Assembly (NCBI GenBank): GCA_016748015.1
Contig: JAAOMT010000494.1
Span: forward strand, 211,156 to 275,155
DNA length: 64,000 nucleotides
Origin: Geosiphon pyriformis uo1
Taxonomy: Eukaryota; Fungi; Glomeromycota
Direction of reading: 5' to 3'
Shown here: positions 37,696 through 56,144 of the stretch, piece after piece
How positions within the stretch are numbered: position 1 is the first letter of the stretch
Layout: each line of letters opens with the position of its first letter
The notes under the pieces: model-generated
What the model was told of the DNA's origin: nothing
The model's input: only the letters and a program-made list of their open reading frames with translations
Databases searched by the model: none
Made by a program: the position numbers and the translations under genes

Positions 37696-39640
37696 ATGTC
37701 TATTTCTGAATCATTGTTTCGTAAGTCCGCTCCAAATGACCGTGCGTACAAAGCAATTTGTCGTGCTAATGAATTCTACGTGTCAAAAAATTATCGCCGT
37801 GCCATAGGTTTGTTGAGAATTAATGTGAATATAATAAAATTACATAATGATAATTATTTTGACTTTGTTATTTTCGCACTCCTTATTCTTGTTAGTTTTT
37901 TTCCAACTTAAAAGATGAATACTCAAAAGCATTAAGGCTATCTCAACCCAACATGGATCCTAAAAAGGCGTCAGACTTTTCAGCATTATTATTCGGTAAT
38001 CGTAGTGCGTGTTATTTTGAGAAGAAACTTTACCAGGATGCCGAGAAAGATGCCGCTCAAATGATTCGTATGCGGCCAGAGTGGGGGAAGGTACGTTGAA
38101 CAAATTTTTAGTAGTGAATAAATTTTGAAAATTCAATTTTGCGAAACTTTTCACTCTTTCCTTTCTAATTTAAATTTAAAAAAAGAACCTTATTGGCAAG
38201 ATTTTATTATGCCTTCAATATTTAATAATGATGGTTTAAGTGAAGGGAGAAAAGCAATTGTCCCGTTTTTTGTAATTTTAAACTATTCCTCACATTTATC
38301 CAATTATGAAATTAATCTTTGGTTAGGGATATTACAGACGAGCAGAAGCACTCATAGAACTCCAACAATTTGACGAAGCAATTGAATATTACCAAGAGTC
38401 ACAGCGACTGGTAAGTAAAACATTAAAAGGAACTCATTAAAAGTTTCCTTAATTTTGTGGTTGCCTCAATGATTCTTTTAGGAACTATCTCATAAAGTTC
38501 CAAAAATCTTACATTTAGGACTCACAGAACCCAAAAATTCCTCTCCGAATTGCACATTCGCTAATCCTAAAGGATAATCACGAAATGGGTAAGTCTCGAT
38601 TGTCAGATGACTTTGTTGCATTTCCCCGATTTGTCACTGCACGTTATTTTAATTTCCGATGTCCACTATAGATATTTATTGACAAAATCCTATTGTTACT
38701 TTTTCCTCTTTTTACGAAGGAATCGCCATATGCCCGCTTGTGCCCGGAAGAGATATATGCCTCCGAAAAACTGCCGTATCGAATCCAGTCCAAGCAAAGA
38801 TTTTTAAATTCGCGATTGAAATGAAAAATATGATTTATGTGATTGTTGACTTGGAGAGCCGAAAATGTTTGGTAGTCGATGCGGTAAGAAACGAGTTTCA
38901 AGGTTTAGATATTAAAAATAATAAAACGGTGCTGGTTGTTTAAATTCAAGATCTCAATGGTATTTATTCATTCAAGAAGTTGTTTTCGACAATTAGTGCT
39001 GGGACGTGAACGGAATTCTCAAATTTATCAAATCCAAAAAATGGAAATTAGTGGGAGCTATTGTAACACATTATCATTTCGACCATGTTGGAGGTAAATT
39101 GAATGTAACTGAAATCCTGTTTTGAATTATTTCTCAGTTAAATTTATTCTCCATCCAGGGAGACCCCCACCGCCATACGATCAATTTTTAATACAAGTCC
39201 CGGGACTTGCCACCCTTTTAAAACGGTTTTCTTCATTGAAGGCATATGTGCATCCTCTCGATCTTCCATATCTCCTTGAGGCGAACCCCGGCCTCGCAAA
39301 TTACAAAAATAAATTTGTAGAGACAACAGGGCAGCATATAGAAACTTTGGGAACAAAGGTGAAACTTCGATTTATTCATGTCCCAGGACATACCGAAGGT
39401 AGTCAAGCAATAATGGTGAATGAATGTCGTCTTTTGACAGGAGATACTTTAATGTGTGGTTGCATCGGTAGAGTTGACCTTCCAGGTGGTAACGCATGCG
39501 AAATTACAAAGACATTAAAGGAAAGATTGAGTCAATTGGAAGATGGGATAATTATATTACCCGGGCATGATTATGGTGGGGAGTGGACCACAATCGGAAT
39601 GGAGAGGGAACGTCAGATTGTCGGGAATATAGTGAAATGA
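37696..39640 (+). CDS. Fusion of a 3-TPR domain and a metallo-beta-lactamase-fold hydrolase (glyoxalase II/persulfide-dioxygenase-like); multi-exon
   Basis: TPR: ANEFYVSKNYRRAIDEYSKAL, LFGNRSACYF, RPEWGKGYYRRAEAL. MBL: THYHFDHVGG, PGHTEGS, TGDTL, GRVDL, PGHDY. Exons join in frame through GT-AG introns. Confidence 0.87.
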
Positions 39641-41098: not shown

Positions 41099-44000
41099 AT
41101 GGAGATCCTCAAAGACAACTTTCAAGAGCTTTTGCCCACTATTGAAAAGGCCATCAAAGAAGCCGATTTCATAGCTTTGGATACAGAACTTACGGGTAGC
41201 TAGAATTATAACTCTTAAAGATAAGGGCTGTTTTTAGCTTTATCTGATAAACTTCTCTCTCCAGGTTTAAATGACCGCATTGAACAAATAAAGATTTTCG
41301 ATGATCCTCAATCCAGATTCACTAAGGTCAGAACAGGGGCAACAAAGGCAAGCAACATTTATTAATGCATCAACGTTGTGAAGATACGTGTCTACCCAAA
41401 CAAATCCTAATTGTGAGTTATTCATGTGCATTTTTGCCAATTTATAGTTCCTCATCATTCAATTTGGTCTGTGTACCTTCACATACTCGGAGGCAGATAA
41501 TACATTTGTTGCGCGACCCTTCAATTTTTACATCTTTCCGGCTAATGCTGATCGGAAAGACTTTAACGATTTATGCTTCCTATGCAGCGGTTCTAGTCTG
41601 CAATTTCTCTCAAAATGTGGCTTTGATTTCAATAAGCTTATCAAGAAAGGTAAAAATGATTATCTAGAAGCGAAGACTGAACTCATCTGGCCTTATAACT
41701 TATAATTATGATTGTAATTATTATGAATCAGGAATTCCATGGTTAAATCGGACCAATGAGCGAAAGCTCACAATACGCAGAGAAAACTTTGCCCAGCGAC
41801 AAATTGGTGACTGTCATCTTTATTTGGTGGCACAAAAAACAAAAAACAAATTAAAACTAATATCATGAGAATCCTTATTTTCAGATAATCCACTCGATGA
41901 AGAAACAAAACTACATGTTGATAACGCCTTGTGAGTTTAGTTTTTTTGTGAGATCAATTTCATAATTGTACTAATTAAAACATCTAAATTGAAGAAAACT
42001 AGTCGAAGCTTGGGTAGAAAATCCACTAGCCGAAGAACTTGTAATAGAAACACCTAGCATTCGTCAAAAACGGTTGCTATTGCAAGAAACACGGGAAAGG
42101 TAAGGAATTACTCATTTTGCTTTGGGTGACTCCTCAAATTGAGTAAACATCATTTTTGTAATTAGATTCGATGGATTCATAGTTGGTGACAGTCGTCAAA
42201 AGAGCGTTATGTTTAGACAAATTAGTCAGGAAGAAAGACAAAAGCGTATAGATGAGGCTGCTGAAGAGGTAAGAGGACATTTCTTGCTTTTTTACATTTG
42301 TAACTTTAAGATTAAGTACATTATACCATGGCCTTAAACTTACGATTAATTGGATGATGGGCAAAGGCTGCCACTTCCCTAATCAATTTCCGTGTAGTTA
42401 TCGAATTGATGGTAGCAGCAAAGAAACCAGTAGTAGGACATAATTGTTTTTTAGACTTTTGCCAGTTTATTAATCAGTTTTGGGAGGAGATACCTGAGCG
42501 GATACGAGACTGGAAACAAATGGTCCATGAGATGTTTGAAATGTGTGTAGCTACTTTTTCACCCGTGTCTATTCCGAACAACAATTGACCCTCTTCTTCT
42601 TTCCCCGTCATATTTGATCTGATTGTAAAGAGTTATAGACACAAAACATATTGCCAGTAGCCATAGAAAATTACAGGTATGCTTTTAAATCATTTCTCAT
42701 TTACTTTCCTCCTCTGATATCGCTCATTCCTCTGTTTTCTTAATAGAAAATATTACCTAAAACCGGTGTCCAAGACATATTGCAAGCTGTCGAGAAATCC
42801 CCGTTCACTGAACATACCCCTAAAATTGGTATTTATTAAATCCTTGACTGAGAGGATAACCCTGTTTCATGGAATCCTTTTTATTTAAAATTTGCCTCAT
42901 TAGTTTTGGATCCGGCATTCAACAGATACACATTCAACGATGAAACCTACCTTCATGAGGCTGGATATGACGCCTATATCACGGGACACATCTTTATTTC
43001 ACTTACTGCCTTCATGTTACACCAAAGCGGTATGTAATTACAGCATTTAAAATAATAGTCCTCCCCTAAATTTATCTAAGGTTTTTTATTTTAGAGGAAA
43101 AGATCGACGCGTATTCTTCAGTTTTCGATGATAGCTTAGCAACACCAGAAATAATAGAGGAGGCCTCAACAATTTTGGTCGAGTCTAATTTTTTAGAATT
43201 ATTAATGACGTCTGAAAAGCTTACCAACCATTATAACAAGTTACATTTAATGAGATCCGATTTCAAGTATATTAATTTGGTTGGACTGGATGGAAGTAAG
43301 TACGAATGTATAGTAACTACCAGATACATGGACTTATTTACTATGCAATAGACTGATCTTAATTTTCCATTTGGAAAAAAATTCCATCCAAGTGCCACAA
43401 GCGAAACCAAACTCATTCCTGCTCTCCAACATTCCGCCGATGACAAAGCAGCAAACATTGTTTACTATTTTTGAAGAATTTGGTAGCATATTTTTTTCTT
43501 GGATAGATGATACGCATTGTTGGCTGACTGTGAGAGATGACCAAAAGCGTGCTAAATTAGTGGAAGGCAGTTTGAAAAAATCCAAATATTTCGCTAAATA
43601 CATGGAGGGTGGGTCAAAGCATGAAAAAGGCAAAGATAAATGTATCACAGTCGCAACTGGCAACATTATAGTAAAATCATGGAACACCTGGATCAAAGAA
43701 ATTACAAATGAGGATGAAAAGAATATTTCAGAAGAAATTCCCGTAGATGGTAGGAAGAACACCTACCAATATATTGATTTCTTTTTTGCCGCTTATGTCA
43801 GAATTCTTACTTTAAAACTTTCTGTTGAAATAGGGGAAATCATCAAAGTAGACAAAGAAATCCAAACCGAAGTATCGATTGAAGGAATGTCTGAAATAGC
43901 ATTTTCGCTCGTCGAGCCAGAACTTTTACCTTCATCTTGGTCATATCCACCTGTTGAAAATGAATGGCCACCTAATTCTGCAAAGTTTCAAAGTTGGTCA

Positions 44001-44186
44001 AAAGATGGCACTGATGATAATTGGGTAAAAAATGAATCCGAGGCTGATAAAGAAGCAGGAACAGATGAAACCACAAATTCAGCTGTCGAAAAACGTAGAT
44101 TATCTCTACCAGATACTAATTCCGCATCCAACAAGGATGAAGATCAAGAAGATGACAACATTGCTAAAAGAGCCAAAATGCGGTAA
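41099..44186 (+). CDS. PARN: Poly(A)-specific ribonuclease PARN (CAF1/DEDD nuclease, R3H-like insert, RRM); multi-exon
   Basis: ADFIALDTELTG, IQFGLCTF, RPFNFYIFP, FDFNK, VGHNCFLD, IDTKHIA and HEAGYDAY; RRM FGSIFFSWIDDT; basic C-terminus. Confidence 0.92.
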
Positions 44187-45601: not shown

Positions 45602-48342
45602 ATGCAGCAACAATTAGACACAACTGCAAGTCTTGCATCGTCCCTATCTCAATCACCTTTATCAGCCTCCGCAACAACTGCTACTACCACAACCAATAAA
45701 CCTAAACCAAAAAAAACTTTTAGTCTTAGTTTCGATAAACTACTAAATTTCATGGCAGCTCCTCTTTCACCCTCCAACTCTGAGCCAGGTGGTTTAGGTA
45801 ATGGTGGTAACATAGGACATTGTACCTGTAGTTGTAATGCGTGTCTTTGTGCTCGAAAGTTTCGTGGCAGCGGTGGATTTTTCTCATCCTCATATCATGG
45901 CCAAATCAATCAATCAGGATGTGCATCAGGCTCTTCATTGGTTGATCTTGATGAATCATGCCTGATTTCAATCAATACACCTCTTGATATCTATGGCCTT
46001 CGATATTTATTGTCCTTAGATAGATATGCGCGTCAAGATGATTTTCGTGAATCCTTACAGTTGCACACCCATTTGCTTGGTATCGCATTGGCCGCTCGTG
46101 TCTATTATTCTTTGGACCAGGTATATGCACATCTCCATGATATGTTCAAACATGAGCAAAGAGCGGAATTTGCAGCATCATATAATTATTTGCAGGATAC
46201 TCAAGATGCGATACTCGAGTACGCTCTTGCTGCGCCACAACCGAGGTCTAGCTTCTTAGATTATATAAGTTTCAAATGTAGCAAGACTATATTAGAGTTT
46301 CTAATGTTTGTGAGGCAAACCCCCGATATTGTGGCTACAGCATTTCAACAAATGCATTCACAAGATCTCGACACCCTGTTGACCACGGAAAAGGTCACTC
46401 TCTACACGAATGGCAGTATAAATAATCGCGAAGCATTGCTTAATAATTTGCCTAGCATTAATCGATTCGATATTGTGGATATTTTGTTAAAAGGAATTTT
46501 CGGGCCATCGAGTTTTCTACAAGAGGATAGATTACGGATGCGAATGTGGGCAGAAATTTTTGCAAGATTGATCGCAAAAAAAAAAGGCGAAAGATTTCTG
46601 TTGGATGTTTTGGACCGATATGCATTTTTATCTCCATGGACAGCAAAGAAATCATTTGAGCTGCAATTAATGAAAATTTTACAGCGTGGTGACACTTTAT
46701 TGGAAAATGTGACTGATGAAGAAGTCCCCAAAGATGCCCCATACTCTGCATTTTCATTGCCCTTTTTGGGAATAATTGGTAATGGAATCGGAGTGACGAA
46801 CAATGGTGTTCCAAAACCATCGAACATTTCTATCCCTCTATCATCAACCTTTGAAGAATTAGGCCAAGAATTTACATCTTCTGAGCAAGAGTCTCAAGAA
46901 AAATCACAAGAAGATGAAAAACCAACAGAAATGGAGTTATTCCTTGATCGCGCCTGTTTAGAGTTACTTTTGGTGCTAGATCGGGATGATGTCATTCCGG
47001 CTCGTATTTTAAGTTTATCACGGGCTATATTAAAACAGGTTCCAGAGCAATTTCGCCATCATGCAACCGTATTTTTGATTGTTCAATGGTTTTTCCATAG
47101 GTTTCTAGGAAGAGCAATTACATATCCAGAGGTTTGTTAGTTCACCAAAATGAAAAATTTGATTATTCCCAGATCTTTTGACCATAAATTTTATTAGCAT
47201 TACGGGATGTTTGAGGAGTATTACATTTCTGATGAACAAAGGCAAAAAATATTGTTCATGATTCATCAACGTCTTTATCGTTACGTGACTGGAATCACTG
47301 ACGCTGTACCGGAATGGTATTTAGCTTCGCAATTCCAACGCTCATTTCATTCGAAATATTATTTATCTTATTTTTTACTCTTCGAAGGGCCCGACAAAAA
47401 ATTTTTGTTGATGAGAATATAAAAATGTTGGTTTACAAGATGGTGGCGAGGTTTTCTGAAGAATCAAATCACCCCGAAATCAATCATGAACTATTATCTT
47501 CCTCAAGTGAGTTCAAAAAATGCAAGGAAATTTTATCGAGCAATGTAATCGTACTGAACCTGACATAATCAGCTATTCATTCACACACAGTACCACAGAT
47601 GGCAACCCCAGCGTTGAAATCAGCGGCTGGGAGCCCTTATCCTTCAACCTCCCAATACCCTCCTACAATAACCCCAACCTTGTTAATTTGCCCTTCGGAC
47701 CTCACTACCTTATTTCACTTTTTGTGCCCGCGATATCGCCCACAACGTCTACGACAAAATATGTCACCTAGAAGTAGCAAATGGAATTCTGGAAGTACAT
47801 ATCACTCGCGAACAAATTCACCACGACCGTCATCAATATTGAGCTTAACGCTGGATGAGAAACTTTCAGCCGCTTCTTCTCTCTTTTTTCCCAGTAATAG
47901 TGACACTAGTTCAATATCATCTGCATCGAGTGTTGATTCAGGTGTGATTGATGGGCAGGTACATACAACAACACTTAAAGACATTAATCATGGTGCAGAG
48001 CATCATAATTTTCATAATCATCATCGGAATGGACATTCGCGTTCAACATCGACCTTTGCCGAAGATGAGCCCTTACCCCAAATCTATGAAGATGTGAAAA
48101 AGGCCATTGATGAAATTAATCGTCACTCAGGTTCTTCATCACAAAATAGCAGTCCTCATCCGATCTCGGAACCCTGGGCATTACTTTATGTGTCGCGTGA
48201 TGGCAAAGAAGTCGTTATGTCAGCTCCGTCAATAGCAGTGGATACATCGCAAACTAATCCATTATTTGTGACGACACCGATTCTTAGGGGTGCAAACGGG
48301 AGTAATGGTGGTTTACCCGAGTTAGAATTGGATATGCCTTTA

Positions 48343-48378
<36 letters not shown>

Positions 48379-51300
48379 TTGAATGAATTATTAACTGAAG
48401 AGGTCAGAACTATAGGCAGAGCTTTATTTCGAATCTTGAGAGAGTATGACTTTATAGGTGCTTTTGACGATTTAGACGTGGATGTAAACGAGTCTGTTTT
48501 GAATAGTGAGTCTACTGATGGATCGAAGCCAAAACGACAAGAAGAATCAGCCGCTTCTTCAATCAATAAACAAACTAAAGCTTCACGATCGGCCCAAAAG
48601 ACTAAACATCCCCCAACGACTATTACTATTTCTTCCCTTCTTTCAAAAGCCATCCAAACCGCACAAGCACATAAAGATTTTGCAGCTGCCCTTTTATATC
48701 ATCAAGCTTTGACATTATTATTGCATCAGCCAGTTCACCTTACCCATAATAATGCCGCTGGTCTTATTACTCTTCTTGCCAAACCTTTGCGTCGTGCCCA
48801 ACATCGTCGAATCGAAAGACACCAAAAGCGTCGTCACTGGTCTGTTTATGCTCATGAAGTACATCTTCGATTAGTTCAGTGCTTATCCCAAAAACGTGAT
48901 ATGATATCTTCATTAAGATTGCGTATGTGGTATGCCTCCGAAATCCGTACTTCAAAGGTTCTGGAAAAGTCAAAGAACTTTTTAAATGATTTAGTCTCAT
49001 ACACAAAGCAAATCTCCCACAAGAATACACCCAAAACGAAAAATAATATTTCAATTAATACGACGAGTAAGACTTCATTGCATAAAGATCCCCATAATCC
49101 AAATACAACGTCTAAAACATTTGAACCCGAATGGCCACCACCATTATCTGAACATGATTCCGAAATTGTTTCACGATGGTTGCATAATTCAGATGTTTAT
49201 AACTTTTTGCCTTGTGAAGAAAGATTTCATCGTTACTGCATAGAGATTGATTCAATACGTAGGAATGTAATGCAAACAATGCTTTGGACTAGTGATCTAT
49301 TTCGGAAAGAGGCAATGATATTCAAGATGGGATATTTTATTGATCGAGAAGAACGAGAAAGGAATAAAAAGTACAGTGGATTACATCATCAACTCCTTAA
49401 CAGTTATCAGAATCAACGTACTTGGCCTGCCACCGGAGAAATACGACGACATAATAGCTTAGCTGATGTATTTAGTGAAAAGTCTACCAATAAACGAGAG
49501 CGTCGTGGTAGTGCTTCAATAATTGGGAGTGCCCCAACTAATGCCGGCTCCAATATCCTATCAAATGGTGGTCGACCAAGACGTGGTAGTAGCAGTAGCA
49601 GTCTTGGTTTAAGCAGTTCAAATTTAGCGGCTAACTTATGCCATGTGATCGAAGATGAAATCATTGATCCAGTGGCAATAAAAAATCTAGAACCTAGTAA
49701 AAAGGGTGTCGGATGTTTTGGAGGAATTCAGGAACAATTGCTTTCAAATGGTAGATTCGATGAAATAATACCACCCTATGAACTTTACACCCCTCCAATG
49801 CCATTTCCACCATCATTTCTAATTGGGGCAAAAAGAAATCACGGGACGTCAATTAACTCTGGAAGGTCTTCATTTGGCTCTCCAATCACAAGCATGGATG
49901 AATTCAAGTTGCAAACCCAAATGAAGTTGACCGGACTTTTGTTGAGTGATTTTGGAAGAGGTTGGCAGAATGGCTGTGAAACTGATGCATGGTTTGAAGA
50001 GTTTGTAGGTGACATTCGTGTGCCAAAAGAACTCGATTTAAATTTTTTCAAACTTGAAAACCCACGCGACGAAAATGGAGAAAATGGGAACGAAGATTTG
50101 AATATTAGCTCTCTGATAGGAAAGGGAATAGCCATTCCAAAGCCACCTGTCAAAGATTTAGAGGTTATAGTATCACAGATGCCATCACTCAATCTATCTG
50201 ATCCCATAACTGTTCCTGAAAAAAAGTCGTTAGTTGATGGAGTTTCACTAGCAAATCTGGTTTCACCAATTGCGATTTCCGAAACAGAATCAGCTGAAGC
50301 CCAATTAGCTGAAGCTCTCGAAAGATCTCCATTCATTCCGCCTATAACCACTCTAAATAGTGAAAAAATACCTCCCTTAAATAATGAACTGAACAATAAA
50401 CCCTTTCACCACATGACTGAATATCCTTTCACAAAATGTTGCAAATATTTAATGGAAGAATTCTCGATTCAACCATCTCCCTATCAAAAGCTTCACGCTT
50501 TATTTGCGATTGAAATGTTGATTGTTGCTTCATTATCATTTGCGCCTCCATTGCCTCATCTAGCATCAGCTCTTTCCACACCTACCTCAGCTCCTTTATC
50601 TCCTGTGCTTATTGCATCGCCACTGGTCACCACCGTAACACCCGGGACTGATTCGATTGTTAATGAACTTGAAAGATTATTTCGCCAATCAAATCTTCGT
50701 CCGAAAAACTTGTTTCGTGATATGCAATTGGTGGCTACACTCATACCTAGCGTAATTCTTGATCTTCGAGACGAAGGAAAAGCTTTTTGGGACATGAGTC
50801 TAGCCGTATCAAGTCTTAAAAAAGAGGTGGTAGAAAAGGTAGTAGAACGTGGAGTTACTGTAATGGATGGGGGTATCATCGAACGTGATAATTCTATGCG
50901 CAAGGCTATAGAAAAAGAGGATGGAATGGGTGAGAAAAACGATTGGATAGAAGTTGATCAGGATTATGAAATGATAGCTGAAATGGAGGCTGTTCGATTA
51001 TTTACTATTGGTAAGTTTTTAATTCATATAAATTTCTAATTTATTCGAATTCAAATTTCACAAATTTAATTTTTATAAATTTTTTAATTCAGGTGCTAAA
51101 GAATCGAACCCTACTGCTCAAAGAGAACTTGCAATTCTTTATCTTTCCCTTCCATCACTTCCTCACTCCTCATCACCGCCACCTCCCCCATTTTATTATC
51201 AAACAAAGGCAACAAATGAGAAATTATCTCACAATAATATGTCAACCAATGGCAGTTTTGGGATATTTGGAAGTCTAAGTGCATTGTCCACCTCCACTCC

Positions 51301-51577
51301 GGCATTTACAATGTCACCATTTTCTAGCCAGATAAACTTAACATCGGATTTTTTCTCACCTAAAGGTAACAAGCAGAAGTATAATCCTTCAAATTTAACA
51401 GCAGCCATTCACTGGTTTCAATTAGCAGCACAGCAGGGAGATAAATTTGCTAAACGTTGGCTAAATCATCGAGACGGTAAATTGGTTGGTGCATTGGCGG
51501 GAAAACCATTCTTATTGGAAAGCGAGGATGAAGAAGATGAGGATGTTGAGGAAATTCGTGGGTATGCCAGTCCATAG
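45602..51577 (+). CDS. ~1800-aa conserved fungal-type protein; putative RasGAP-like + VPS9-like + Sel1-like architecture (GAPVD1-like)
   Basis: Long ORFs 45602-47131 and 47590-51010, two short middle exons and a last exon to 51577 join through GT-AG introns. The gene itself is solid; the domain calls rest on motif resemblance (see findings). Confidence 0.85.
48343..48377 (+). repeat. (GAT)n microsatellite encoding poly-Asp
   Basis: GATGATGAT run in frame within the large ORF. Confidence 0.9.
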
Positions 51578-53980: not shown

Positions 53981-56144
53981 ATGGGAGCAATAGTTACCAA
54001 AAAAGTAACAGTCACGAACATTGATCCAAAAGATCCAGCTGAAACCAATTCAATACACGTTATCACACAAAATGGTATAGAAGGTTATTACGAGAAACCT
54101 GGAAAAGGGTTGAATCAACGAAAAAAGCTAAAGAAATTACAGAAACCTGATCCGATCGAGAGGGTGAGGCAAGAGTTGGATTTGGAAAAGACAAACACAT
54201 TTGAATCAATTGCAAGTTGGACGAGTCAGAAAGCTGAAATTGAAAAACCATCAGAGTTGGCGATTGTTTTAATAGGGTAAGCAATGGTTGGTCCTAGTTG
54301 AAAAAATGAGATACGGAAAATATTCCTTCTTGATTTCTTTTTCGTTTACAAATCATCTCTAATCATAGGCTTGGGCTGGGACATTTCTTGTCAGCTCTTG
54401 ATCGATTGATTGTGGCAACGGCATTACCTCGAATTGCTTCAGATTACCATGCATTAAGTCAAATCTCTTGGGTTACAACTTCCTATTTACTCACCACGGT
54501 ACTTAACAATTTTAAATGCTATCACCTCTTATTTCACGATATCTACGTCATTTTATTATTCCCTTTTACCACTCACTTCTGTAATTAATCAATTTTTATC
54601 TGGCTTCAATAATTAGACGGCATTTCAACCAACCTACGGCAAAATTTCGGACATTTTTGGTAGAAAGCAAACATTTTTGTTTGCCATAAGTAATTTTCTG
54701 ATTGGAAGCCTATTATGCGCAATCGCTCCAAACATGGAATCTATGATAGCATTTCGAGCCTTTCAAGGGATTGGTGGAGGTGGTATTGTAAGTTTGGTCA
54801 TGATCATTATTTCGGATATCGTTCCCCTGAGAAATCGACCCAATATTCAAGGTCTTTTTGGGGCTGTCTATGGAATGGCTTCGCTTATTGGCCCTCTCGT
54901 GGGTGGTGCTTTAACTGATCATGCTACTTGGAGGTAATTCTCAAGCTTAACATGAAGTCTTTTTGAACCATCTAAATTTCTAGTAAACCTGAACTTTTTC
55001 ATTCCACTTTTTATCGGATAGAATGTGTTTTTACCTAAATTTGCCAATAGGAGCTCTAGCAATTGGAGCAGTTTTCTTCTTGCTTCGTTTACCCCAGCGA
55101 GAAGGATCTTTTATCGAGAAACTGAACAGGATCGATTGGCTCGGAACTTCGATACTTGTTTTAGCAACTGTTTCACTTTTGCTCCCATTAAGTTGGGGCG
55201 GTGATAGGTATCCATGGAACCATCCAATTATTATCAGTTTACTTTGTTCCGGGACAATTTTATTTATTTTATTCGGAGTTATTGAAGCGCATTATCCGAT
55301 TGAACCAATTTCACCTATTCATTTAATTCTCAATCCTGCAGTCCTCGCTTGTTATGGTGTCAGTATGTGCCATGGGATGATTTTCTTTTCGATGATTTAT
55401 TACATACCTCTTTATTTCCAAGTGGTTAAAGGTGAAACAGCCACAGTTTCTGGTCTGCAATTGTTACCATTTGTTTTAGCTGTTGGATTTGGTTCAATTG
55501 CCTCGTGTCAACTACTTGTACGAACTCAGAGGTTTAAAGCCCAGTATTGTGTTATTATTGGTAGCGCTTTCATGATGCTTGGTGCTGTGTTGGTTTCATT
55601 CTTGACTGAAAACTCGACCCGTGTAGAGCAATCTTTCTTTTTGATTGCTTCTGGTCTTGGTGTTGGATTCATCATGCAAACTATTTTTTTAGTTTCTGTG
55701 GCAGCTGTAGATGATGATGATGTAGCGATCTTAATTTCCCTTTTGAATTTTTTTAGATCAAGTAAGTAGTGAAAATAGAAATAGAAATCTTCATACGCGA
55801 TCATTTGAACCAATATTCTGACTAATTTCATTTATTGCGTTACAGTTGGTGCAATTTTTGGTATCTCAATCGTTGGTACGGTATTCAGAAACGGTCTAAC
55901 AAAACGTATCGTTGAACTCGGGATCAATCTACCTATTCAATCGTTGAAAACTTCAACTACTTTTGTAAAGTCACTTGATAAAAATCAACACAGTTTAGTT
56001 ATACATGCCTATGTTCTCTCTTTACAAACTGCTTTTCGAATATTAATACCATTCGCGGGACTTTGTATACTATGTTCATTGGGACTTTTGAGAACTAAAC
56101 GAGTGCATAAAGATGTTACCCTTGTTAATAATACTATAACGTAA
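53981..56144 (+). CDS. MFS drug:H+ antiporter, DHA2 family; paralogue of 11892-14089; 5 exons
   Basis: LSALDRLIVATALP, QPTYGKISDIFGRK, RAFQGIGGGG, GPLVGG..TWR and YYIPLYFQVVKGETAT, with the same four intron positions as the first MFS gene. Confidence 0.93.

Follow-up and report, generated by a model that had tools for sequence, protein, structure and literature searches.

A RasGAP domain and a VPS9 domain within one protein are the hallmark of GAPVD1/Gapex-5/RME-6, and the yeast proteins Muk1 and Vrl1 carry no RasGAP-fold domain. According to a survey of VPS9 evolution, GAPVD1 occurs in Holozoa, Amoebozoa and Fonticula alba, and Fungi lost it once Fonticula had branched off (PMC6032885). The present analysis concerns a five-exon gene of Geosiphon pyriformis (Glomeromycota), located on the plus strand at positions 45602-51577 of a 64,000-nucleotide window of contig JAAOMT010000494.1, and the family of fungal proteins to which its product belongs. 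Like GAPVD1/Gapex-5/RME-6, these are proteins of 1000–2500 residues with a predicted RasGAP-type domain N-terminally, a long low-complexity middle and a predicted VPS9-type domain C-terminally, and the acidic residue of the VPS9 aspartate finger is kept; the likeness is one of architecture. The two modelled folds stand in this order in a gene that is expressed, spliced and conserved across its family. With Muk1 and Vrl1, the protein shares the position of a fungal VPS9-type protein beyond Vps9 itself. The layout is known from GAPVD1; what appears to be new is a fungal, Pfam-invisible family that has it at the level of predicted folds.

Predicted domains of the protein

The initial annotation of this gene, made from the sequence alone, proposed a RasGAP fold N-terminally and a VPS9 fold near the C-terminus, in the order known from GAPVD1. 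AlphaFold2 models and structure searches recovered the former at ~46193-47748 and the latter at 50413-50826, and their order holds at the fold level on one spliced transcript. Foldseek searches with the two models agreed with this expectation, giving probabilities of 0.87–0.99 for RasGAP-fold entries N-terminally and of 0.97–1.00 for every VPS9 entry C-terminally. Residue numbers cited here are those of the database protein P0001 (hypothetical protein G9A89_008097, 1869 amino acids), which the largest exon matches at 100%. The main features of the two domains are the following:

46193..47748, plus strand: predicted RasGAP-fold domain, residues ~198-642, running across introns 1-3, with a disordered insert at ~372-438 (AlphaFold2 model, Foldseek, Pfam)
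46535..46537, plus strand: codon of R312, the candidate arginine finger (family alignment, Pfam register)
50413..50826, plus strand: predicted VPS9-fold domain, residues 1531-1668 (AlphaFold2 model, structure searches)
50545..50640, plus strand: disordered, lineage-variable insert in the VPS9-fold domain, residues ~1575-1606 (predicted local distance difference test (pLDDT) <50, alignment of relatives)
50650..50652, plus strand: codon of D1610 (PGTD), at the aspartate-finger position (Pfam register)
50779..50790, plus strand: K1653-A-F-W1656, with Lys and Trp where Rabex-5 has Tyr354 and Thr357 (Pfam register)

All of the motifs quoted in the initial annotation were found in the plus-strand translation, in order and at the places given there. 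They are conserved columns of a family of ~330 clusters, and thus are not due to chance:

46289-46336, plus strand: ILEFLMFVRQTPDIVA
46484-46534, plus strand: LLKGIFGPSSFLQEDRL
46994-47029, plus strand: IPARILSLSRAI
47093-47131, plus strand: FHRFLGRAITYPE, an FLR-like motif, continued past intron 1 by HYGM in exon 2
47225-47254, plus strand: ISDEQRQKIL
47680-47724, plus strand: LLICPSDLTTLFHFL
50473-50502, plus strand: PSPYQKLHAL
50521-50544, plus strand: IVASLSFA
50641-50661, plus strand: PGTDSIV
50698-50733, plus strand: RPKNLFRDMQLV
50773-50820, plus strand: EGKAFWDMSLAVSSLK

The VPS9 core fold consists of six helices, aV1-aV6. The C-terminal domain was modelled with AlphaFold2 (residues 1515-1760, alignment of 28 sequences), with pLDDT >90 in the core and <50 in the internal insert. 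An unbiased structure search with this model placed Rabex-5 first (Z 11.2; root-mean-square deviation (rmsd) 2.1 Å over 108 residues, chain 260-369), AtVps9a second (Z 9.2), and the Legionella VPS9-like guanine nucleotide exchange factor (GEF) Lpg0393 fifth (Z 8.2). In a second structure comparison, all seven VPS9 entries occupied ranks 1–7 (Z 9.2–13.7, rmsd 2.0–2.7 Å); the entries of Rabex-5 reached Z 11.2–13.7 at rmsd 2.0–2.2 Å over 105–108 residues, and those of AtVps9a Z 9.2–9.4. As modelled, the C-terminal domain has the VPS9 fold. With Rabex-5, Vps9 and AtVps9a it shares this core, the aspartate finger, and Pro62 and Gln70 of the Pfam profile, whose counterparts here are the invariant P1627 and Q1635. 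Unlike these proteins, the Geosiphon protein has neither CUE nor A20 ubiquitin-binding parts, and the Pro of GADxxLP and the GYY..T/S residues are replaced.

The Pfam VPS9 family (PF02204, cut-off 27 bits) has no match on the Geosiphon protein. Among the 130-residue domains of ten relatives that have no insert, it is the top family in seven, always in a single register and below the cut-off (12.4–21.6 bits), with the best E-values (2.9e-4 and 4.7e-4) found in Syncephalis. The insert that the initial annotation had marked between IVASLSFA and PGTD is real and varies in length with the lineage: none is found in members from Zoopagomycota and Entomophthoromycotina, ~30 amino acids are found in Glomeromycota, and 70–100 in Pezizomycotina. 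It is because of this disordered insert that Pfam is blind to the VPS9-fold domain.

The same register supports the proposal that the Asp of PGTD stands at the position of the VPS9 aspartate finger, which is D313 in Rabex-5 and D185 in AtVps9a. The GAD Asp of the true Vps9 of Geosiphon falls on position 47 of the Pfam VPS9 profile and, in the PDB alignments, this position corresponds to the AtVps9a residue mutated in 2efh (D185N) and to the first Asp of the Rabex-5 ADD. In the Syncephalis protein P0206, matched without gaps over profile positions 40-80, the PGTD Asp also falls on position 47; since true Vps9 and the family share this position, the PGTD Asp lies at the aspartate-finger position. 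In ~203 members, this column holds D in 170, E in 11 and N in seven (D or E in 89%).

The N-terminal domain was modelled in the same way (residues 125-700, alignment of 17 sequences; pLDDT ~85-96 in the ordered core) and compared with 48,161 PDB representative chains with no Foldseek prefilter. For this predicted structure, the eight best of these chains are all RasGAP-fold (Z 9.8–13.6), and the best unrelated chain reaches Z 8.0:

SynGAP: Z 13.6, 281 residues aligned
p120GAP: Z 13.4 and 11.4
NF1: Z 12.7 and 12.2
IQGAP2: Z 12.0
plexin B1: Z 11.8
Toxoplasma chain, RasGAP-fold: Z 9.8

A language-model (ESM) feature search of the domain gave 0.92 to RasGAP clusters. On the full P0001 sequence, RasGAP (PF00616) is the sole Pfam family found (residues 315-529; E 8e-4; 19.8 bits, below the cut-off of 28.3), and it is the top sub-threshold family over the same region in eight of the ten lineages tested, with Basidiobolus P0024 reaching 28.0 bits against the 28.3 needed. 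When single exons were searched with Pfam, neither RasGAP nor VPS9 was matched, and an exon-wise genome scan with PF00616 detected the canonical genes and nothing at the 45602-51577 locus. As judged from the model, the N-terminal domain has the RasGAP fold.

FLRFxxPAIxxP is a RasGAP motif, and the Arg of its FLR supports the finger loop. The family block FFxRFLxxAIxYPExYGM (in Geosiphon, FHRFLGRAITYPE plus HYGM) was aligned by the profile to the FLR motif of SynGAP, FLRFLCPAIMSPSLFGL, in a non-significant match, and P509, E510 and G513 within it are invariant in the family. The likeness to p120GAP, NF1, SynGAP, plexin and IQGAP consists of an all-helical RasGAP fold (Z 11.4–13.6) and an FLR-like motif followed by an invariant P-E..G, whereas the finger loop is non-canonical and the model has the conserved R312 in a helix. 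Judged by the exons of Geosiphon's own RasGAP genes, the arginine finger occupies Pfam profile position 21; the Pfam RasGAP alignments of the family begin at profile position 24-25. R312 corresponds to position 22 when the register is extrapolated, and to 21 by gapless offset from G329-x-x-[FY]-L; its column holds R in 57 and K in eight of 70 aligned members (a basic residue in 93%). The domain may be a GTPase-activating protein (GAP) or, by analogy with IQGAPs, it may bind GTPases without activating them.

A side observation concerns an IQGAP-like RasGAP gene of Geosiphon (L017, G000:C705), in which TLFGYAQNAREEFLLLKLF, upstream of the finger, resembles GIFGPSSFLQEDRLRMRMW of the family without gaps. 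Judged by sequence, this may mean that the N-terminal domain is nearer to the GAP-related domains of IQGAP type, or it may be a chance likeness.

Between and beyond the two domains, two further conserved regions were delimited:

48610..49332, plus strand: conserved middle region, residues ~930-1170, helical by sequence pattern (conserved and invariant alignment columns)
50827..51175, plus strand: predicted long helix and first TPR/Sel1-like repeat (EAVRLFTIGAKESNPTAQRELAILYLS), across intron 4 (model, conserved columns)

The invariant or conserved columns of the middle region include L981, R1032 and Y1037, and a second conserved stretch is found at ~1360-1400; no recognised Pfam family was matched in the middle region. 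Candidate C-terminal Sel1/TPR-like repeats were overlooked in the initial annotation. Residues 152-243 of the C-terminal model match TPR proteins with Z 7–8.5 (IFIT1, 8.5; Ctr9, BamD and Scc4), values that lie within the chance range for helical models. Sel1 (PF08238, cut-off 30.7 bits) appears below threshold in seven of ten family tails (E 2.4e-4 to 0.07), and on the Geosiphon segment 51095-51574 with E 0.001. Together, the model and these matches are suggestive of a long helix and two Sel1/TPR-like repeats after the VPS9 fold.

Gene model and transcript

The span 45602-51577 runs exactly from the ATG to the stop codon of the gene. All four introns are of the GT..AG type and are missing from the contigs of the public run X1, which indicates that the gene is expressed and spliced. 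The transcript-supported product has 1890 amino acids, and a frame check of the joined exons revealed no internal stop. The parts of the gene are as follows:

45602..51577, plus strand: whole coding region of the predicted RasGAP-fold/VPS9-fold gene (P0001 match, X1 contigs, frame check)
45602..47131, plus strand: exon 1, residues 1-510, with the low-complexity N-terminus, long N-terminal helices and most of the predicted RasGAP-fold domain (open reading frame, splice donor)
47132..47197, plus strand: intron 1, GT..AG (X1 contig 2 has a loose end with the final letters of exon 1; agrees with P0001)
47198..47316, plus strand: exon 2, HYGM...ISDEQRQKIL... (P0001, X1)
47317..47387, plus strand: intron 2, 71 nucleotides, GT..AG (X1 contig joint 47315>47387, cut +1)
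47388..47506, plus strand: exon 3 (P0001, X1)
47507..47590, plus strand: intron 3, 84 nucleotides, GT..AG (X1 contig joint 47506>47591)
47591..51010, plus strand: exon 4, with the end of the predicted RasGAP fold, the low-complexity linker, the conserved middle, the predicted VPS9-fold domain and the start of the TPR/Sel1-like tail (open reading frame, P0001, X1)
51011..51092, plus strand: intron 4, 82 nucleotides, GT..AG (X1 contig joint 51009>51092, cut +1)
51093..51577, plus strand: exon 5, with the predicted Sel1-like repeats, an acidic tail and the stop codon (X1 contig 5, gapless over 51092-51542)
51365..51427, plus strand: 21 codons cut out as the last intron in the P0001 model and retained in the transcript, first half of the predicted second Sel1-like repeat (X1 contig, homologue consensus)

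The last intron of P0001 is doubtful, since the X1 contig is continuous there and the segment is conserved in homologues, whose consensus retains it as NPxNxAxAxHWFxLAAxQGD; the Sel1 match spans it as well. The database gene model is probably wrong at 51365-51427, and the real product probably has ~1890 amino acids.

Family, origin and function

A word search and an exhaustive profile search delimited a family of ~330 clusters at 50% identity. It is sharply bounded: when representatives were searched with a profile of the C-terminal domain, 317 of the 337 matches had E ≤ 1e-10. Every named member is fungal and, as the initial annotation had said of similar proteins, labelled 'hypothetical' or 'uncharacterized', the exceptions being a few names assigned automatically by UniRef, for example 'Ras-GAP domain-containing'; names are carried by only a subset of the family matches, so that absence from other groups is not established. 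The named members come from the following groups:

Glomeromycota: Ambispora, besides Geosiphon
Mucoromycota: Endogone, Calcarisporiella
Mortierellaceae: present
Zoopagomycota: Syncephalis, Thamnocephalis
Entomophthoromycotina: Basidiobolus, Conidiobolus, Neoconidiobolus, Entomophthora
Pezizomycotina: Orbiliomycetes, Pezizomycetes, Sordariomycetes, Dothideomycetes and one lichen fungus
Pucciniomycotina: one species

No member from Saccharomycotina is found in this named subset, and literature searches yielded no account of a fungal RasGAP-VPS9 protein. Many Mortierellaceae records of ~1500–1900 amino acids (P0006, P0009, P0012, P0021, P0026) are without the N-terminal RasGAP-fold part, and records of ~2460–2530 amino acids from the same family (P0043, P0045, P0200, P0201) include it, with Pfam RasGAP E-values of 0.003–0.03. 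The short records look like truncated or split gene models and not like true domain loss.

On balance, we lean towards regarding the family as a very divergent fungal counterpart of GAPVD1/Gapex-5/RME-6 that was inherited with strong divergence. GAPVD1 is present in F. alba, which belongs to the sister lineage of Fungi, as well as in Holozoa and Amoebozoa, so inheritance with divergence is more parsimonious than a loss and a later re-invention. The survey cited above relied on sequence-detectable VPS9 domains and, with both domains below the Pfam cut-offs, the family would have been invisible to it; the reported fungal absence of GAPVD1 would then be explained by an undetected divergent orthologue. 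A more specific version is put forward tentatively: the GAPVD1 lineage may survive as a cryptic family, extended by Sel1/TPR repeats, in Glomeromycota, Mortierellomycota, Mucoromycota, Zoopagomycota, Entomophthoromycotina and Pezizomycotina, where it would provide an additional Rab5-family GEF coupled to a Ras-type GTPase-binding or GAP module.

A number of observations weigh against the reading preferred here. Orthology is deduced from architecture and phyletic logic only, and both folds are predicted models, not solved structures. The bounds of the profile search given above make the family an isolated one, and the matches listed in that search hold the family only, with no bridge to canonical VPS9. 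No signal was obtained with the hidden Markov model (HMM) of the family against six-frame pieces of the true VPS9 loci of Geosiphon, L001 (C638) and L002 (C661), and phmmer and profile searches of PDB sequences were blank or returned only the non-significant match to the SynGAP FLR motif. The RasGAP+VPS9 Atlas cluster took only rank 21 in the ESM feature search (score 0.85), which is a weak lead. GAPVD1 is not known to have Sel1 repeats. At the residue level, and against taking the protein simply as a Rab5 GEF, the Tyr354 position (profile 87) is Lys in 175 of ~204 members, the Thr357 position (profile 90, Ser/Thr) is Trp in 185 of ~204, and the Pro of GADxxLP (profile 51) is N1614 in Geosiphon and Asn, Asp or Glu in the family. 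Delprato et al. 2004 reportedly found this Pro and Thr357 to be important for Rab5 exchange. In the N-terminal domain, the FLR Arg (R500 in Geosiphon) is kept in 47% of members (33/~73 counted), and the canonical arginine-finger motif FRxN(S/T) is absent, with the finger position located by eye, 301, never being Arg in the aligned members.

Unlike GAPVD1, the Geosiphon protein is too divergent for Pfam at either domain, has two predicted Sel1/TPR-like repeats after the VPS9 fold and a variable insert within it, and carries no canonical FRxN(S/T) finger, with Lys and Trp at the Tyr and Thr positions that contact Rab as defined in Rabex-5. It has no HMMER similarity to the Vps9 of Geosiphon itself. 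A word search with the full-length family profile, aimed at GAPVD1 at E ≤ 10, returned family members only, and one with a true Geosiphon VPS9 exon gave no candidates. Alignments by hhalign of family profiles with single exons of the true Vps9 and RasGAP genes of Geosiphon were not significant, being wrong or trivial. A shape search of the ESM Atlas with the C-terminal domain returned no VPS9 cluster, and the feature search with this domain was likewise uninformative.

The missing sequence-level link to GAPVD1 in the family searches and the failure of the ESM feature search to single out the RasGAP+VPS9 cluster would also suit an independent origin, in which a RasGAP fold and a VPS9 fold were joined separately in early fungi and the GAPVD1-like architecture is convergent. 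Among VPS9 proteins, convergent gain of the same partner domains has occurred repeatedly, ankyrin being an example (PMC6032885), and the family has the extra predicted Sel1-like repeats and a conserved middle region. However, the order of an N-terminal RasGAP and a VPS9 near the C-terminus is exactly that of GAPVD1, the family occurs in most of the early-diverging fungal phyla sampled, and the phyletic spread of GAPVD1 already noted makes inheritance the simpler course; we therefore consider separate fusion unlikely, if well worth keeping in view. Far less credible is that neither fold is real and that the AlphaFold models merely show the resemblance common to helical bundles. The alignments were indeed shallow (17–28 sequences), Foldseek E-values were weak (0.13–1.8), helical models can reach Z ~13 by chance, and the ESM Atlas shape search gave no VPS9 cluster. 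Yet every solved VPS9 entry, and only those, heads the list at an rmsd of ~2 Å over the whole domain, with a drop thereafter, and the top eight N-terminal matches are uniformly RasGAP-fold. In many lineages, sub-threshold Pfam matches independently name the same two families and keep consistent registers, the SynGAP FLR motif was aligned by HMM, and the ESM features independently indicate RasGAP, all of which makes an artefact very improbable.

The product of the Geosiphon gene is best explained as a cytosolic regulator of small GTPases with several domains and ~1890 residues. Starting at the N-terminus, the RasGAP-fold domain would be followed by a long disordered linker, part of which is a conserved and helical middle region, then by the VPS9-fold domain and two Sel1/TPR-like repeats. 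The VPS9-fold domain would bind a Rab5-family GTPase (Ypt51/52/53 or Rab21/22-like), on which D1610 would promote the release of GDP. To judge from the alignment, the Rab-binding surface is remodelled, and its new form is strongly conserved; since Tyr354 and Thr357 have given way to Lys and Trp, the domain probably departs from Vps9 and Rabex-5 in specificity or efficiency. The RasGAP-fold domain would bind a Ras-type GTPase, perhaps as a non-canonical GAP that uses R312, perhaps as a binding module of the IQGAP kind, and the Sel1/TPR repeats would dock a partner protein.

It may be asked whether catalysis has been lost altogether, leaving a scaffold that retains both folds and binds GTPases in the manner of IQGAP, as well as partners through Sel1/TPR. 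A precedent is offered by IQGAPs, which have a RasGAP domain and are listed as lacking GAP activity (PMC11139668); the absent arginine-finger motif, the poorly conserved FLR Arg, the replaced Tyr354, Thr357 and Pro positions, and the disordered insert within the VPS9 fold all fit such a pseudo-enzyme. Against it, 89% of members keep D or E at the aspartate finger and 93% keep a basic residue at R312, which argues for selection on catalytic-type residues. In Rabex-5, single mutants of Asp313 and Tyr354 have kcat/KM lowered ~28-fold and 17-fold, respectively, and Y354A lowers GEF activity and does not abolish it (PMC3563681). A purely scaffolding role thus seems improbable to us.

If the family is the fungal GAPVD1, the evolution of Rab5 activation in opisthokonts would have to be redrawn. 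Filamentous fungi, plant pathogens and mycorrhizal relatives among them, would gain a candidate extra regulator of the Rab5 family that is hidden from yeast models, and in filamentous and symbiotic fungi Ras signalling would be tied to early endosomes in a way so far unrecognised. The natural exchange of Tyr354/Thr357 for Lys/Trp would then test what a working VPS9 domain requires. The family is also a clear example of domain identity recovered by structure prediction once the sequence signal has faded.

Genome context

The Geosiphon genome contains two canonical VPS9-domain loci and four RasGAP loci, so the gene at 45602-51577 adds to the standard set. An exon-wise genome scan with PF02204 detected only the two true VPS9-domain genes, and not the present locus. 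One of them, on C638 (L001), is the canonical Geosiphon Vps9 with a C-terminal CUE-like exon, and the second, on C661 (L002), has a long low-complexity insert. Two weak partial matches to PF02204 were also seen, on C727 (L005) and C532 (L006).

An operon-style context was considered and ruled out, the neighbours being unrelated eukaryotic genes:

55023-55766, plus strand: exon of an MFS/TRI12-type transporter, downstream, unrelated (E 4e-11)
43371-44183, plus strand: RNA-binding-like exon, upstream, unrelated, with a weak match to RNA_bind (PF08675; E 3e-4)
39122-39637, plus strand: weak match to the metallo-beta-lactamase fold, unrelated (E 7e-4)

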